A stretch of DNA of 64,000 nt. Source: Pavona decussata. Taxonomy: Eukaryota. The translations under genes and the position numbers were made by a program. Positions 9,830-38,500 of this stretch are shown piece after piece; the first letter of the stretch is position 1, and every line of letters starts with the position of its first letter. The stretch lies in the NCBI GenBank assembly GCA_977016875.1, contig CDRNST010000027.1, positions 1,984,001 to 2,048,000 on the forward strand, given 5' to 3'. The notes below the pieces were generated by a model that was not told the DNA's origin, did not search any database, and saw nothing but the letters and a program-made list of their open reading frames with translations.

Positions 9830-11127
9830 GTGTAAGGTGTTTCTTTCTTGGAGAACGCTTAACCTGAGTGACGTCATCAAACCGAAAATGCTCAGGGGGC
9901 ACGTGACCTATGCCTCAAATAAAACGATAAAGGAAAAATGAAATAAAACAAACAATAAAAAAAGAAAATTTAAGAGAGAGAAAAAAATAAAATGCTCTTT
10001 AGTCTAAAGAAAGGGAATCCCTTATCCAGCCAAATATTGTTCACCACTTTTCTAATGGTAACTGAACAAGATAAAAGTTAATACTTTTATTTTGCAAGAA
10101 AAACCTTGACCAAACCGGCCTTGTGCTTACATATAATCAATTTTACGTTATACAAAGTTATGAATTCTACGTTTTAGAAGAACGCAACGTTTTTTTGTCA
10201 TTATATGAGACTGAAATAAGGTACAACTGTGGAAATAATTATATAAATATAAAAATTTTATACCTTGTCTTGTTCCGAGTAAACGATAATTCCGATCTGA
10301 AGAAGAATACAGCTCGTTGACAGATGTTCACGTATGTTCTGTCGTGAATTGTAATACCGTCGTGAATTGTAATACCTGTCGTGAATTGTAATACCTGTCG
10401 TGAATTGTAATAACACTTGTCGTGAATTGTAATACCTGTCGTGAATTGTAATAACAGTTGTCGTGAATTGTAATAACGTACCTATCGTGAATTGTAATAA
10501 CCTGTTGTCGTAATTTGTTATAATCCGAGCTGTCGTGAATTGTAATACCACGTTGTCGTGATTTGTAATAAGTCTTAAGAACAAACAATTACAAAAGAAA
10601 ATATAAAAAATGACGCAAGAAAAACAACCTTTATTTTGATCCTTTTGTATTTTTTAAAAATTTGAAACACAAAATCCAGCTTACCTTCGTCGGTAACATT
10701 TGTTTACGCTTTGAAATTGAAGCAAGACAACGTTTTAATTGACCCGAACAGTATAATTTGTCAGGCACCCTTGGTTGGGCAAAATTATTCCTCTGACCGT
10801 ATTTCAGCTGCGTGACTTTTCTAAAATACGACAAAAGTACGCTTTTTCATAACAAAGTAATTTTAAAAATATGAGTGGTGAATGAATACATTTGAACAAG
10901 GAAGTCTCATTCTTTTTAAAATGCTCTGCAAGCGTGTTCAACTTGTCTCAACGTATGAGAGTCACGTACATACTTGACACTCGGTTGTAAATAACAGTTC
11001 CTTGAAGACTTCTCAGAACAAAATCTTCAAAAACAACATTTGAAGAAAACGTTACTCCTGATTCACACAGAGATTACGCTACAGAGGTTACCCCGATAAC
11101 CTTAAAGATAAAATTCTCTCGGACGGT

Positions 11128-12446
11128 TGTTCTGTCGTGAATTGTAATACCGTCGTGAATTGTAATACCTGTCGTGAATTGTAATAACACTTGTCGTGAA
11201 TTGTAATACCTGTCGTGAATTGTAATAACACTTGTCGTGAATTGTAATACCTGTCGTGAATTGTAATAACAGTTGTCGTGAATTGTAGTAACGTACCTAT
11301 CGTGAATTGTAATAACCTGTTGTCGTAATTTGTAATAATCTGAGCTGTCGTGAATTGTAATACCACGTTGTCGTGATTTGTAATAAGACTTAAGAACAAA
11401 CAATTATACAATGATGGTAAAATGACAGGCCAAACACGGCTCCTATTGGTCGAGATAGGAAAAATATGACCTTCAAAGCTAATTTGCTCTTACGAATACG
11501 CCGTCTTTCAAAGATCTCCCTTTTTTGTACGAAAGTAGGAAGGGTCTTTGAAGATCTCTCTTAGCAGAGGCTGATTTTCTATCAAGTGCCATATACTCAT
11601 CTGAATGGTTTTTAGGTAAAGCACAGAAGGGCGCCAATATTCTGCAACAAACGGCAAAATGTTTTTGCGCGTTTTTTGTTTGTTTTGTAGGGCCGGCATT
11701 CTTTCGCTGATATTGACCGTCCGAGAGAATCTTATCTTTAAGGTTATCGGGGTAACCTCTGTAGCGTAATCTCTGTGTGAATAGAGTAACGTTTTCTTCA
11801 AATGTTGTTTTTGAAGATTTTGTTCTGAGAAGTCTTCAAGGAACTGTTATTTACAACCGAGTGTCAAGTATGTACGTGACTCTCATACGTTGAGACAAGT
11901 TGAACACGCTTGCAGAGCATTTTAAAAAGAATGAGACTTCCTTGTCCAAATGTATTCATTCACCACTCATATTTTTAAAATTACTTTGTTATGAAAAAGC
12001 GTACTTTTGTCGTATTTTAGAAAAGTCACGCAGCTGAAATACGGTCAGAGGAATAATTTTGCCCAACCAAGGGTGCCTGACAAATTATACTGTTCGGGTC
12101 AATTAAAACGTTGTCTTGCTTCAATTTCAAAGCGTAAACAAATGTTACCGACGAAGGTAAGCTGGATTTTGTGTTTCAAATTTTTAAAAAATACAAAAGG
12201 ATCAAAATTAAGGTTGTTTTTCTTGCGTCATTTTTTATATTTTCTCTTGTAATTGTTTGTTCTTAAGACTTATTACAAATCACGACAACGTGGTATTACA
12301 ATTCACGACAGCTCGGATTATTACAAATTACGACAACAGGTTATTACAATTCACGATAGGTACGTTATTACAATTCACGACAACTGTTATTACAATTCAC
12401 GACAGGTATTACAATTCACGACGGTATTACAATTCACGACAGAACA
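11128..12446. mobile_element. Second copy of the same element inserted in inverted orientation inside the first; 6-bp TSD GACGGT
   Basis: Same TGTTCTGTCG...CGACAGAACA ends. GACGGT lies at 11122-11127 and 12447-12452. The inner copy carries the uninterrupted target site (TATTGACCGTCCGAGAG at ~11711). Confidence 0.92.
11480..11840 (-). pseudogene. Degraded Penelope-like retroelement RT C-terminal fragment carried inside the TIR element (split counterpart at ~10995-11127 plus 12453-12690 on +)
   Basis: Frameshifted reading LRLLRTKSSKTTFEENV...QRLRYRGYPDNL...ERMPALQNKQK...ILPFV.EY..PSV..LK.I.MS.WHLIENQPLLREIFKDP...KKG resembles the thumb/C-terminal region of Penelope-like RTs as I recall it. Confidence 0.7.
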
Positions 12447-32569: not shown

Positions 32570-35500
32570 TCATCTAGCTCCTTTAATTTTGTCCATCATT
32601 GCCTCCTTTAATTCAGAAGGTTTAAAGACTCCATATTCTGTGATAATGCCTCCTGTAATTAGCTCTGCTGGTGTGATGTCAAAACCTGGATTCCAGCAAC
32701 CAATCCCATGAGCTGCAATTTGCACATCACCAACTGTAGTCAGCTCGTGATGAGGCCTTTCTTCAATCTCAATTTGGTGGCCACTCTCAAGATTGAGGTC
32801 TATGCTGGTAGAGGGTGACGCGACGTAAAAAGGAACCATATGGTATTTGGCTGAAAACAAGGAAAGGATCTATTGATGTTCAAGGCAATAACACAACTAA
32901 ATTTGACAACCAAAGATGTAGACTTGATGATCACAGCTTAACTGCTGGTATTAACAAATGCAGACTGACCAGTTTCATTACATTGAGAAAAGATTTAAAA
33001 GTCTTGCGTTCTACCAAAAAGTGTGACTTTCTTTCAAACTCAGAAACAGGTGCAGGTAAAACCTTACATGTCATCAAAACTGGACTGAGGTGAACAAAAA
33101 AGGGACCTTATGACACCATTAACATGCCAATCTTGAGCTACTGTGTACGGTCAGTTTAAGATAGTTGAACCACACGGACTCCTCAGAATGTGCAGTTTCA
33201 GAAAATATCCATACTCCCCTCCACAGAAAGGTGTTTGTTTTGCACATCCCCGCTCCCCATAGGAAATTCCAGTTTAGCTTCATACTTAGCTTCTAAAATT
33301 TTGACTTTCAAGATCCCCCTCCCGCTTGGAATTTCCGATGACCTTCCATGGGGTGGGTACGGATTTTTTCTAAAACTGCACAGTACACTTGTACATGTGT
33401 TCAACAACTTTGAAAAATTCAGTACACTTTTCAATCACTGAAAAATCCCACAGGCACCATTAACACAGTCATCATTACGTACCACACAATGATTGTACCT
33501 ACCAGCTATAGCTATTTGATAAGTACCAATCTTGTTTGCTGTGTCACCGTTAGCAACCACTCTGTCAGCACCAACAACAACTGCATGTATCCCTTTTGTT
33601 TTCATAAGCAATGACACCATGGAATCTGCAACTAAAGTTGATGGAATCTTCTCATAAACCAGTTCATAAGCTGTAAGCCTCGAGCCTTGATTGTAAGGCC
33701 TTGTTTCAGTGCAGAACACGTGATCAATACAGCCTTTCTCGTACAAGCTTCTGATGACACCTAAAGCAGTCCCGTAGCCCGCTGTTGCAAGAGAGCCAGT
33801 GTTGCAATGAGTGAGTACCTTCAGCTTGTCGGCATTTGTCTGCTGTACCATGTGTTCGGCTCCATACCGTCCAACAGTTTGGTTATCTCTTACATCTTTC
33901 GCCAACATCCCTTCTATTTCCTGAACAACTTTCTTCTTTATATCTTCAGTGTCTTTTGTTACTGAGGACAAATGCGTAACAAGTGATATTAGTTCCCTTG
34001 CAGTGTCTGATATATTCACAGCTGTTGGTCTTGCTGTTGTAAGATATTCCATCTTCTCTGTAACAAACTGTACAAGTTCCTCCACTGAGCTGAATGACCT
34101 TGGCAGCATCTCTACTATCAAACTCAGGGAACCGACAATAGCAATGGCAGGCGCACCACGCACCTGGAACAAAAATGCAATGTCATAAACACCATTCAAA
34201 CTATCTTGAGGTGTATAATACGATAAAAATTTTGATACACCCAATTGAAAAAATGTTGTCCCGTGCAAAGTGTGAACCATACAACCTGGAGGAATTATGG
34301 GGTGATCTTATACATATAATGCGCATGTTTTGTGTTGTTCTCTTGTCCATATTTCTCAAAGCTTAAAATCAGCATGTGCTGTTATTTTCTAGCAAGAAGA
34401 ATGCAAATAGGCTCATACAGGTAGGTCAAAGGTCCTGACACCCTTGCCTTACAGGGTGCTTGAGTGTTCCAGATAACTTTCAAAATCAGAGAGTCAAGGA
34501 ATAATTTTGAGGGGTCAATAGCTGTGGTTCTCTCTTAATCTCCTTAAGTCTATACCATTCATTTTGTCGGGTCAGGAAGCCAGGCTTGTCAGGTTTTTGA
34601 CCTGAGACCCCTCTTTTATCTGAAACAATGGTGCTTACATGGATAATGGTTGGACGTCTATTCTGGTAAATGGCATCTAAAAACTTGAAACATGTACATC
34701 ACAATTTACAAATGTACATAAACTGGTTTTATGAGTTGACATAGGAATTAGTTTTCAGACCGGGGGGTATAAATCTCTCTGTCTGGTATGGCTACTGGGG
34801 TGAACTTACTTTGGTATGACTTACTATAAAATTTTAGTAATAGACCAGTACCATGTAATTTATGTTCACTATATACATGCAGAAATGCAAGAGGGGGATG
34901 GAATGAACTCATGATAATAGCTAAATGTGAAAAGTGATCTGCTATCATGTAAGCATCCCTTTAATTGTTGGGAGGTTCAAGCACAAAGTAATTCCATTAA
35001 TTTCTCATTTTGCTGTTAACCAGCTAATTTACCTGTAATGTATCAACACATAAAGTTAAACCTCCATTTGTTTAAAATAGTTTATTTCATCACACTTCAA
35101 AAATTGACAATAAGCACTCATCAGTTACGAGTAAAATGAGACAAATAATTTACGCATTAATAAATTTTATTTTAAACAAGTCAATCATCCCAAGACCAAC
35201 TATATTTCAATGGTAGTCAAATAACATTATAAAAGGAAACAATCCAGTACTCTAACAGTGATACGAAAGTGCTCAAGCGGTTGTTATCAAGCTGCATGTC
35301 TGATGGTATACTGTATACCATACACCAAGATAGCAGTATGGTACTGTTACATGTATACAGCTGATTCGACAAAGGTTGTCTAAAAAAAGCATAAAAGCGT
35401 ACGCGACAATGCCGAAAGGTTGTCTGGGAAATACCCAATAAATTTCAATAAAAGCTCAGAATCCATAATGCCTCGACCGTACAGCGAAGACTTGAGATGG

Positions 35501-38500
35501 CGGGCAATATGGATGAAAGAGTTTCTAGGATACAGCGTTGACGAGGTAGCGGCTGCTTTGTACATGTCGCCAAAAACCATTCTTCGCTACGTATCAAAAT
35601 GCCTGAATTCTGGAGAAGTGAAAGCAGAGACTTTGGGACGACCGATGAATAGTTTTCTTATGCATCCGCACGTGGAGTTTGTAATAATGGAAGCGGTACT
35701 TGACCACCCGGAAAAAACCCTCTCAGAAATTGCCCAGAATGTCTACGAACAGACAGGGTCAGAACGTGCTCTTTCGAGCATATTGCTGTATTTAAAACGG
35801 AACCGTTTTAGCCGAAAAAAGGTTTGTCACATATTTTTTGTCAGTGCTATATTTTGATTTTTCCCTGCTTATGTAAATTTAAGAAAAAACATGTTATTGT
35901 TATTATTTTTATTATTATAATCACTCATTGTTTTTTTAAAAGCTAATAACCATTCATTGGTTTTAAAAGCTCACAGCAAGTGCCCTTCAAAGATCTGAAG
36001 CAGACAGAGTACTTTTCAGGTCTAATGTTTGTCTCCTGGATCCTGAGATGTTGGTGTTCTTGGATGAAAGCGGATTTGTATGTGTTTGTTTGCTGTCTGA
36101 CACAGCATTTCGTTCTCTCTTTTACTATTACTTAGCCCTGATCGTTTAGTGGTCTCACTTTTTTTTATTTCATCAGGACAAAAGACTTAAACGTACATAT
36201 GGATATAGCCCGATCGGCAAAAGAGCTGCACTGAAACGTATGGCGCAGAACTGGGGACCGCGCATAACTGCCATTCCTATTATTTGTACAGAAGGAATGA
36301 TTGATCTTGGTGTTTTTCAGGGGAACGTCAATGGGGCAACATTTGAAGACTTTTTGGATGAAAAGCTATGCCCCAACTTGCTTCCATTTAATGGAATCAA
36401 CCCGCGATCAGTGGTCATAATGGGTACGATAGAATCTTTGGCAGCATTAGGACTTTTATCGAATTGTAAAATAATTGTTTCCACCCTTGTCCAAATTCTC
36501 TATTAAAAACATCATTGTAAAAAGCCCTCTCTCATGAATTCATTTCTTCCCTTATTTCTTATTTGTCTGTTAGATAACGCGGCCATCCACCACACGCAAG
36601 CAGCGATTGACGCAATCAATGCAACGGGAGCAGTTGTTGTTTTTCTTCCCCCCTACAGTCCTGATTTTATGCCGTGTGAGGAACTCTTTGGACAAGTAAA
36701 GAGCTGGATCAGGGAAAACGATGTGGCCTGGCAATTTTGCATGGATCCAGAACTTATGGTTGAAGAAGCGTTTCTTCAAGTCACGGATGAAGAAATCAGA
36801 AACTATATTCGGCATACAGAGTATTTTTAATGACTTTTGTTTGCAACAGTTACTATTCATGTAAATTATGAATTTGGTTTTAATTACAAAGAACTCAGTT
36901 CTGCCAACAGCTTGTCCTTCTGTGAAGCGAACTCATTTTCGTCAAGAACACCATTGTCGTTCAAAATCTTAAGGTCCTTCAGCTGCTGAAGGATTGCACT
37001 ACGGATACGTGTCTAAACCAAAAAGAAATCAGCTGATTAATTAAAACTGAATACATGAAGACATAAAAAATCCACCTGTAGGATAAATGTTAAGGCTTAA
37101 AGGTTCTTACCTTTTTTTCAACGTCCGTAGAATTCCCAGTGAATTCATTGTTGGATGGTTGAGTGTGATTGACCAAACATCTCGCCTTCCCAGTAAAAAA
37201 TGGGACGTCTGGAGGGTTGTCTTCGTTGTCGTGGGTTCCGTTTACCTGAAACAAAAAAACAATACTAATACCTGCATTTTAATAGCCACATTAATGAGCT
37301 CCAGGCGTTATGAGCAGCAGTTAATATATTGTTGTTTGCTTCAAAATTTGTAAAATAGTATGTACAGTAGGTATCAAGCAATATTTTCAGGAAAATCAGA
37401 GATAAATGATGCGGAGGAAAGAAATATAACATTCTACTTGCTTCCCGATTATTAAACGCTTTGATCAGTGCACGATAAAGCGTGCGTTACTCCACGTGCA
37501 ATTCATGCTTTTTTGTACGTTTGTCCAAAATTTATATGAGTAGTTACCAAATTTCTTCAACTCCTACTTTAAAAGATAATATTCAAACAAGGTTACAAAA
37601 ATGTTGTATTCTAATGATGAGAATTAAATATGCCTTAGCTGACTGGAAATGATCCGCGGGAAATTTAAATTTTCCTCACCATCATTCGCGCCCAGCAACG
37701 TAACTTGAATTCTGGAAGCTTGTGTTTTTTTCGCAGTCTCGACAAGCAAGCGTCATAGCTACTCTCTCCTCTTTCGTCATCATCTTCTTCACTTCCACTC
37801 ACCGCAGTACTGCAGCTGGGCTTAACTAAGTTTAGTAAATGATAACGGACAGTGAAAAAAATAAGAACATGCAGTTGACCTTCAAGTGAGGCAGAACGCG
37901 CCTTGTTTTATAGCGTTTGTAAACAATACCTTTCCTCTTTTTTCCTGGAAGAACTTTTGGAGGGTCTTTATGTGGGTCCACCCACAAGGTTATGATGCCG
38001 TTTTTTGCCAAGGATAACGCCTCAGCAAGCTGGATCTCCGATGATATGGAGTACTTTTTCTTTCCGTCGGCGTAGTACCCAATTTGGAATGTTGTGTCTG
38101 ACGCGGGAGCGATTTCCCCTCTGCAGTTCTCGAGGAGGTATTGCTTTAAAGTGAACACATTCTCACATAAGGGCACGCCCTTTACTGAATAGGTGTCGTA
38201 CCTACTCTTGTTTGTTTCCTTTAACACGCGCAGACAAATATTCATAGTTCCGCCTTCCATCGCGCTGAAAACTCGTGAACTTGACGATGAAACAGTAAAC
38301 TACCCCAACCCATAATGCCTTTCGGTATTGTCGCGTACGCTTTTATGCTTTTTTTAGACAACCTTTGTTGAATCAGCTGTATATGGGGCTATGTCAACCT
38401 CAATTGATCAAGTTGTTGAGAATACAAAATTGATTTGTAATGGGAAAGCTTTTGGTGTCTCTTACGGAATCTTCATCAACTGGCCTGGCACTGGCTCATC

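Follow-up and report, generated by a model that had tools for sequence, protein, structure and literature searches.

Tc1/mariner elements are the textbook case of transposons requiring nothing but their own transposase, which is why they are widely used as gene-transfer tools. Which function could then be fulfilled by a second, spliced gene residing between the ends of such an element? This question is raised by a locus of Pavona decussata, located within a stretch of 64,000 nucleotides (the window, positions 1,984,001 to 2,048,000 of contig CDRNST010000027.1, here C27:1984001-2048000) of assembly GCA_977016875.1, which comprises 602 Mb in 1180 contigs. The element at 35358-38379 of this window hosts a transposase gene on the forward strand and a second open reading frame (ORF2) on the reverse strand. 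With a probability of roughly 60%, we consider it to be a structurally intact, recently inserted autonomous DD34E transposon of the IS630/Tc1/mariner (ITm) type, belonging to a large two-gene lineage in which ORF2 serves as a transposase-binding accessory subunit.

Element Structure and Coding Capacity

The element proper (35358-38379) is bounded by inverted repeats. A repeat search delivered inverted arms at 35354-35428 and 38309-38383 (75 nt, 92% identity), within which the terminal 62 bp of the left (35358-35419, forward strand) and the right end (38318-38379, reverse strand) are 97% identical and differ by two mismatches. Both ends are flanked by TA (35356-35357 and 38380-38381), representing the target-site duplication. 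The two genes are convergent, with start codons 48 bp (transposase) and 57 bp (ORF2) inward of the 62-bp ends and with a spacer of 53 bp (36831-36883) between the stop codons. An earlier sequence-only reading had claimed 62-bp terminal inverted repeats with two mismatches and a TA duplication, stop codons 53 bp apart and start codons within about 60 bp of the repeats; direct reading and end-to-end comparison confirmed the former, and the distances given above agree with the latter. The layout is not a product of chance, because other copies are found in the same genome and both a diverged family and other species repeat the same 4+4 exons.

Exact copies of the 11-bp motif AAAGGTTGTCT occur three times in the 64-kb window, all of them within the element ends. 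Two are located 44 bp apart at the left end (outer copy, 35371-35381; inner copy, 35415-35425, both on the forward strand) and one at the right end (38356-38366), where the counterpart of the inner site is decayed, leaving the inner copy a feature of the left end only. The core of this motif, AAGGTTGTC, is kept in the ends of a diverged sister family (family B) and of a copy from Stylophora pistillata, both described below. We infer that the AAAGGTTGTCT copies are putative transposase-binding sites. Copies of AAAGGTTGTCT with one mismatch are also present at 10622-12116 of the window.

The transposase gene consists of four exons with introns that are all of the GT..AG type, and its product comprises 321 amino acids. 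The window exons were searched singly, with full-length natural homologues (NCBI gene models and intronless open reading frames) standing for the whole proteins. Exon 1 (35468-35821, 118 codons) encodes the helix-turn-helix (HTH) DNA-binding part and matches HTH families as well as the NCBIfam IS630 model. This N-terminal part scores best with IS630-type models and not with the Tc3-type HTH, which was matched weakly and in one relative (20 bits versus a cut-off of 31.5). Exon 2 (35970-36077) carries the first catalytic Asp (LDESGF) and the last base of exon 3 (36177-36423) opens the codon of the second catalytic Asp, which intron 3 interrupts (G|AT) and splicing restores as ..VVIM-D-NAAIHH... 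The catalytic Glu, the C-terminal helices and the stop codon are contributed by exon 4 (36574-36830). Exons 3 and 4 match Pfam DDE_3 with 26.8 and 39.3 bits, respectively (cut-off 28.6), and the intronless relatives score 94-99 bits on this model. All three catalytic residues (D, D, E) are present, and a direct count from the second Asp to the Glu gives 34 residues. The segment NAAIHH...MPCE of exon 4 aligns gap-free to the DD34 segment of SETMAR, with the Glu of ..MPCEE.. as third catalytic position; the enzyme is therefore classified as DD34E.

Independent support for the three transposase junctions comes from the intronless relatives. The peptides of the four exons align to them contiguously and in the same order: exon 1 corresponds to residues 1-116, exon 2 starts from residue 117 and exon 4 from residue 236, directly after the split Asp. 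The four-exon DD34E enzyme of 321 amino acids that the sequence-only reading had proposed on the forward strand proved correct in its exons, its GT..AG introns and its D-E spacing. Together with the TA duplication and the terminal inverted repeats, the N-terminal HTH and the DDE_3 domain are the features of ITm membership. Within intron 1, a tandem duplication of 29 bp (35917-35971) repeats the TTTTAAAAG|CT acceptor context so that another potential acceptor lies 27 bp upstream of the modelled one.

ORF2, on the reverse strand, is likewise composed of four exons with GT..AG introns, as claimed before, and codes for a protein of 246 amino acids. Exon 1 (37930-38260) encodes a PB1-like beta-grasp domain followed by a basic KKRK patch, exon 2 (37680-37825) an acidic linker and conserved helices with an invariant Trp in their final segment, exon 3 (37111-37245) a conserved motif and a variable linker, and exon 4 (36884-37012) a SHOCT-like C-terminal helical hairpin and the stop codon. 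Four modules are kept in alignments of family members sharing about 25% identity, namely the N-terminal domain, the basic patch (KKRK), the motif ..L..KH...Y...Q.R.WA.M...G.H.S.D.PP..P.F.G with its invariant Trp, and the C-terminal ..LRS....QLK.LK.L.E.G.LT..EF.EQK..IL..L.

The fold of the ORF2 modules was approached by structure prediction as well as Foldseek and Pfam comparisons. The AlphaFold2 model of exon 1 (predicted local distance difference test [pLDDT] 85, predicted template modelling [TM] score 0.74) shows the order beta-beta-alpha-beta-beta-alpha-beta, i.e., the PB1 topology, and its top eight Foldseek matches are PB1 domains (p62, aPKC/Par6, p40/p67phox) with E-values from 2e-4 and TM-scores by target of 0.56-0.67. 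One Porites homologue is labelled "PB1 domain-containing" in UniRef. In the PB1-like domain, strand 1 and the residues following it contain conserved basic positions, and the stretch that in our own reading of the alignment corresponds to the acidic OPCA motif is mostly basic or neutral. When solved structures were searched by sequence with the PB1-like profile, no useful match was obtained. For the C-terminal part, precomputed database matches and UniRef call several homologues SHOCT, and the model of a full-length Oculina homologue (P0073, pLDDT 84) shows helical hairpins at residues 129-164 and, C-terminally, 205-250 with disordered linkers between them. Domain searches of ORF2 revealed no enzymatic or DNA-binding domain, and NCBIfam remained without result. 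The earlier domain guesses are borne out as likenesses, the PB1-like beta-grasp model and the SHOCT-like tail both staying under the Pfam thresholds.

Linkage, Selection, and Splicing of ORF2

Searching the genome with ORF2 exon 1 returned 12 loci at E<=1e-3. Besides the window, these comprise seven loci with transposase exons alongside (C8; C289, C6, C273, and C67 of family B; C270 and C354 of more distant lineages), three internally deleted loci (C93 and two on C20) and one decayed fragment with stops (C2). Every clear ORF2 relative in this genome is either linked to a transposase, an internally deleted copy or a decayed fragment, and no stand-alone host-gene copy was found among the clear relatives at these 12 loci and at nine loci in other assemblies. 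Weak ORF2-like matches on C15 and C104 (E ~0.007) were dismissed as noise; tblastn was negative and no transposase is encoded nearby.

Family B is a diverged sister family with four full-length copies, which possess their own inverted ends of about 80 bp starting with TA|CAGCT. Its layout is convergent and all six intron positions are the same as in the window, with canonical splice sites. Compared exon by exon with the window, identities range from 61 to 81% for the transposase and from 51 to 69% for ORF2, transposase exon 4 being the most conserved piece of the enzyme. Each of the four full-length copies carries at least one lesion. Two near-identical, internally deleted family-B copies of about 1.7 kb (L061 and L062; C20:5350342-5353647 and C20:5308540-5311845) are located 42 kb apart and keep the 5' parts of both genes; they arose either by segmental duplication or by movement of a non-autonomous derivative.

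The ratio of nonsynonymous to synonymous substitution rates (dN/dS) was calculated exon by exon, with the counts alone being summed. A nearly intact copy from another assembly (L078) shares 85% DNA identity with the window at a dS of about 0.2. In this comparison, dN/dS amounted to 0.24 for the transposase and to 0.21 for ORF2, with 92% identity of exons versus 83% of introns. Towards family B, the synonymous sites of the window copy have reached saturation, at dN values of 0.17 (transposase) and 0.37 (ORF2). ORF2 is thus under purifying selection and constrained as strongly as the transposase.

Splicing of ORF2 at the predicted junctions is apparently seen in a close relative, represented by a Logan contig (L068, 1004 nt, run SRR26904559). 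The contig is about 90% identical to the window and covers positions 38379-37930, 37808-37678, 37246-37111, and 37014-36767, lacking precisely the three ORF2 introns. It starts 35 nt outside the inverted end and passes the ORF2 stop codon into the antisense of transposase exon 4. The simplest reading of this contig is a spliced read-through transcript. Provided that it is RNA, the convergent transcripts overlap, and ORF2 is transcribed at least partly by read-through from the flank.

Predicted Complex of ORF2 and Transposase

The complex was predicted for a natural pair of intronless proteins from locus L075, consisting of a transposase of 320 amino acids and residues 76-348 of ORF2. The pair reached a score of 0.71 (0.68-0.73 in three runs), the best control 0.02; the 0.71 mark is attained by 51 out of 78 solved complexes and by two out of 108 mismatched pairs. 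At least 66% of the contacts agree between the runs, with a partner pLDDT of at least 69. On the side of ORF2, the confident contacts involve a loop and a strand of the PB1-like domain, the Trp-bearing helix (..NIQYRIWAECIEART..), which makes the lowest-error contacts with the transposase, and the SHOCT-like hairpin. On the side of the transposase, residues 193-226 and 279-303 are contacted, i.e., the C-terminal part of the catalytic domain. All three ORF2 modules involved are conserved, and the contacted part of the transposase corresponds to window exon 4, the most conserved segment of the enzyme between families. The prediction supports a binding of ORF2 to the catalytic domain of the transposase.

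Recent Insertion and Related Copies in the Genome

A contig joint 35355->38380, present in four out of four DNA-like public runs, skips exactly 3024 bp, which corresponds to the element plus one TA. The runs stem from at most two samples of one study, possibly including the assembled individual. The depth of this empty-site joint is 16-79, compared with 29-135 for the left flank and 12-95 for the element interior, and the empty site is exact and shows no footprint, from which we conclude that the insertion is young and either heterozygous or polymorphic. Based on this empty allele and its two open genes, the window copy is the only candidate for an active copy that its subfamily has in the assembly.

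The other full-length copy (C8) is 89% identical to the window copy and has TA on both sides, with frameshifting deletions in both genes. Its exons and introns have diverged almost equally from those of the window (92.9 versus 91.2% identity), with dN/dS values of 0.53 and 0.63; judged from its sequence, C8 is a dead copy. The copy on C93 is internally deleted.

The left 157 bp of the element (35358-35514, forward strand) are common, with about 94% identity, to a family of miniature inverted-repeat transposable elements (MITEs) of about 259 bp, in which the first 157 bp of the left end face an inverted copy of the first 115 bp. TA flanks both sides of 18 out of 21 delimited MITEs. In the four DNA-like runs, the summed contig depth over 35388-35502 is about 5000 times that of the flanks, a value that is no copy count; it shows that the MITE family sharing the element ends is very abundant. 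The MITEs (loci L004-L030) have two left-type ends and thus two AAAGGTTGTCT-type sites per end, unlike the autonomous element, which has two AAAGGTTGTCT sites at the left end only. These two-site ends may be the reason why MITEs far outnumber full copies.

Distribution in Other Species

Among loci from other assemblies, a transposase adjoins ORF2 in nine out of nine, with L073 having a truncated HTH gene only. A word search with ORF2 exon 1 returned 67 proteins, including one gene model of Stylophora pistillata. The underlying locus represents a decayed copy of 3.0 kb with the ends and the 4+4 exon arrangement of the window element; this arrangement is shared by two more loci from ENA assemblies. 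NCBI gene models of 196-251 amino acids with the same ORF2 junctions were found in Porites lobata, Montipora foliosa, Oculina patagonica, and Desmophyllum pertusum, and partial ones of ORF2 are available for Acropora and the sea anemone Exaiptasia.

An exhaustive ORF2 profile search extended the family to 876 clusters (50% identity) at E<=1e-3, of which 248 remain at E<=1e-10. Many of these clusters are full-length single open reading frames of 230-370 amino acids. Five loci of three such single-ORF proteins were investigated, and at four of them an intronless DDE_3 transposase of 308-321 amino acids adjoins ORF2. L074 and L075 contain convergent intronless pairs, L076 and L077 pairs in tandem with both genes on one strand, and L073 the truncated HTH gene mentioned above. 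In both tandem loci (L076:5001-7058 and L077:5001-7058), ORF2 is located upstream of the transposase with 156 bp between the genes, showing that the gene order is not fixed across the wider family. The pairing of ORF2 and transposase is therefore old and widespread, the coral branch being the one that possesses introns. The two-gene layout is widespread in marine invertebrates, yet almost unannotated; the only names found on the wider single-ORF set are the sponge Amphimedon queenslandica and a sponge-associated bacterial bin.

Several deposited family members deserve a comment. P0294 is recorded as hypothetical protein of an uncultured Candidatus Thioglobus bin and is probably sponge host DNA binned with the symbiont. 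P0074 from Acropora cervicornis (298 amino acids) has an F5/8 type C-like N-terminus fused to ORF2 exons, probably an annotation chimera originating from a transposon within a host gene. In one ORF2 sublineage (locus L067), the models of Porites lobata (P0068-P0071) and Montipora foliosa (P0069) are at least 87% identical, and the same sublineage is visibly similar in Acropora cervicornis (P0074, P0078), a similarity judged by eye. The families of Porites and Montipora are believed to have been separated for a long time, and the high identity of their ORF2 models suggests a possible horizontal transfer of the element between corals.

Discussion

The view of ORF2 as an integral gene of the element, already expressed in the sequence-only reading, is supported by its linkage to the transposase, the shared intron positions, the purifying selection and the complex predicted for a relative pair. 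We propose that ORF2 would act as a non-enzymatic accessory subunit, which would bind the C-terminal part of the transposase catalytic domain via three parts, namely the PB1-like domain, the helical hairpin with the invariant Trp and the SHOCT-like tail. The KKRK patch would probably direct the protein to the nucleus, and the PB1-like and SHOCT-like modules would probably form an oligomer. Because of the predicted transposase binding, the putative nuclear patch and the putatively oligomerising modules, ORF2 could help to assemble the transposase complex on the AAAGGTTGTCT-bearing ends, or hold it in check. A more far-reaching version is put forward as a tentative idea that has the odds against it: ORF2 might be an obligatory second subunit throughout a large overlooked ITm branch of corals, sea anemones, sponges and probably other marine invertebrates, where a PB1-like/SHOCT-like oligomeric scaffold would clamp the catalytic domains and build the paired-end complex, resulting in a two-component Tc1-like system comparable to that of Harbinger.

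A number of observations weigh against an active element with a transposase-binding ORF2. In this genome, all other copies are broken, be they from this subfamily or from family B, and activity consequently rests on the single window copy and its empty allele. Runs of this species that are probably RNA contain 0-3% of the element's words, and the four DNA-like runs show an even depth over the introns and no splice evidence. The spliced contig L068 could be an intronless DNA copy instead of a transcript, and its start outside the inverted end does not favour the inward promoters that the sequence-only reading had suggested for the inverted ends. The binding itself is a model and no measurement: seven out of 44 blind pairs of neighbouring genes pass the same complex test, and the modelled pair is not made up of the window's own proteins, the relative being about 28% identical to the window in the PB1-like part. 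On the level of domains, Pfam PB1 (PF00564) gave no match to window exon 1 at E<=1 and was detected in the homologue P0073 only, with 16.7 bits and below the cut-off of 23.6. Likewise, SHOCT (PF09851) matched window exon 4 with 22.7 bits and relatives with 23.8-25.9 bits, all below the cut-off of 27.

Binding of the catalytic domain could also serve to restrain the enzyme. As a self-limiting inhibitor, ORF2 would damp transposition and thereby spare the host, and it would be no required cofactor. The predicted contacts are located on the catalytic domain and not on the DNA-binding part, the convergent, overlapping 3' ends could give rise to antisense RNA, and MITEs without coding capacity far outnumber full copies, all of which would be in line with such a brake. 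A pure inhibitor, however, is easily lost, yet ORF2 has remained linked to the transposase and constrained like it across saturated synonymous divergence, and we regard this explanation as unlikely. A lower probability still is assigned to ORF2 serving the element without touching the transposase, be it by nuclear import, by tethering to chromatin or target sites, or by anti-silencing via host partners of the PB1-like domain. PB1 domains are general protein-protein adaptors, the KKRK patch follows the PB1-like domain, and disordered linkers join the modules in the single-chain model. The complex test was nevertheless passed with a wide margin over the controls, and none of the results points to a host partner.

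The remaining two explanations deny ORF2 any role in the element or even its existence as a gene. PB1 is usually a host domain and has been picked up by transposons before (PMC8616336), in agreement with ORF2 being a captured host gene that travels as a passenger without a function for the element (transduplication). This is very improbable and was rejected, since no stand-alone host copy was found among the clear relatives at the 12 loci of this genome, the linkage is maintained in convergent and tandem layouts and also in intronless lineages, the dN/dS of ORF2 equals that of the transposase, and the ORF2 family amounts to 876 clusters at 50% identity. Practically no weight is left for the ORF2 model being an artefact of chance antisense open frames. 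Nothing speaks for it but the absent RNA data from this species, and it is refuted by the conservation across species, the models with pLDDT values of 84-85, the spliced contig and the independent NCBI gene models. An accessory subunit that binds the transposase is thus the reading we prefer.

If this holds true, a large lineage of Tc1-like elements would employ a constrained, transposase-binding second protein, pointing to a different way to build or control a transposition complex. It would also provide a function to test for an ORF2 that is reportedly described only as "unknown" in this respect. With both genes intact and an insertion that segregates with an empty site, the window copy represents a good experimental starting point, and the abundant MITE family indicates that the element ends are a good substrate. 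Recognition of the family would further aid the annotation of coral and sponge genomes, as it is almost unnamed in public annotation.

In comparison with classic Tc1-like DD34E elements such as Tc1 and Sleeping Beauty, the element shares the TA target site, the inverted ends, the HTH and DDE_3 domains, the 34-residue D-E spacing and the repeated end motifs. It differs in that the classic elements contain one, usually intronless, gene, whereas here the transposase has three introns and is accompanied by a second gene of four exons. A second protein is known from PIF/Harbinger, cut-and-paste elements in which the transposase works with a second element-encoded, non-catalytic binding protein. A non-catalytic, element-encoded partner is the common denominator, with binding being only predicted in our case; PIF/Harbinger, however, is an unrelated superfamily, and its partner is a Myb-like DNA-binding protein in contrast to the PB1-like and SHOCT-like ORF2 without a recognisable DNA-binding domain.

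A second ORF is also attributed to the L31 elements, for which Puzakov and Puzakova reportedly found an ORF2 of unknown function as a regular part in bivalves, with L31 elements being reported from hexacorals as well. A second, conserved ORF is likewise present here, a possible counterpart of the L31 ORF2. L31 is defined as DD37E (PMC7325037; bioRxiv 10.1101/656579), whereas our element and its intronless relatives are DD34E. For this reason we do not file the element under L31; it may belong to the same or to a sister lineage. The TLEWI elements of molluscs are Tc1-like elements with introns and a DD36E signature (bioRxiv 10.1101/656579), sharing with our element an ITm transposase gene split by spliceosomal introns and differing by their single gene, their occurrence in molluscs and their DD36E spacing as opposed to 34 residues. 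Extra reading frames are also known from the ciliate ITm elements TBE and Tec, which are DD34E (PMC7325037), but these have three ORFs including a zinc-finger protein and a tyrosine recombinase, are confined to ciliates and possess very different ends.

PB1 domains, as present in p62/SQSTM1, aPKC-Par6, and p40phox-p67phox, are "usually not associated with TEs" (PMC8616336). The modelled ORF2 domain shares their fold and differs by weak sequence evidence and a putatively OPCA-equivalent stretch that is not acidic. In a literature search on L31, two-ORF Tc1/mariner elements and PB1 or SHOCT in combination with Tc1, which did not extend to the papers of Puzakov and Puzakova, no description of the present layout was found. 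To the known systems, our analysis adds a fold assignment for ORF2, a predicted complex between its product and the transposase, relatives that are intronless or arranged in tandem, and a candidate for a live copy.

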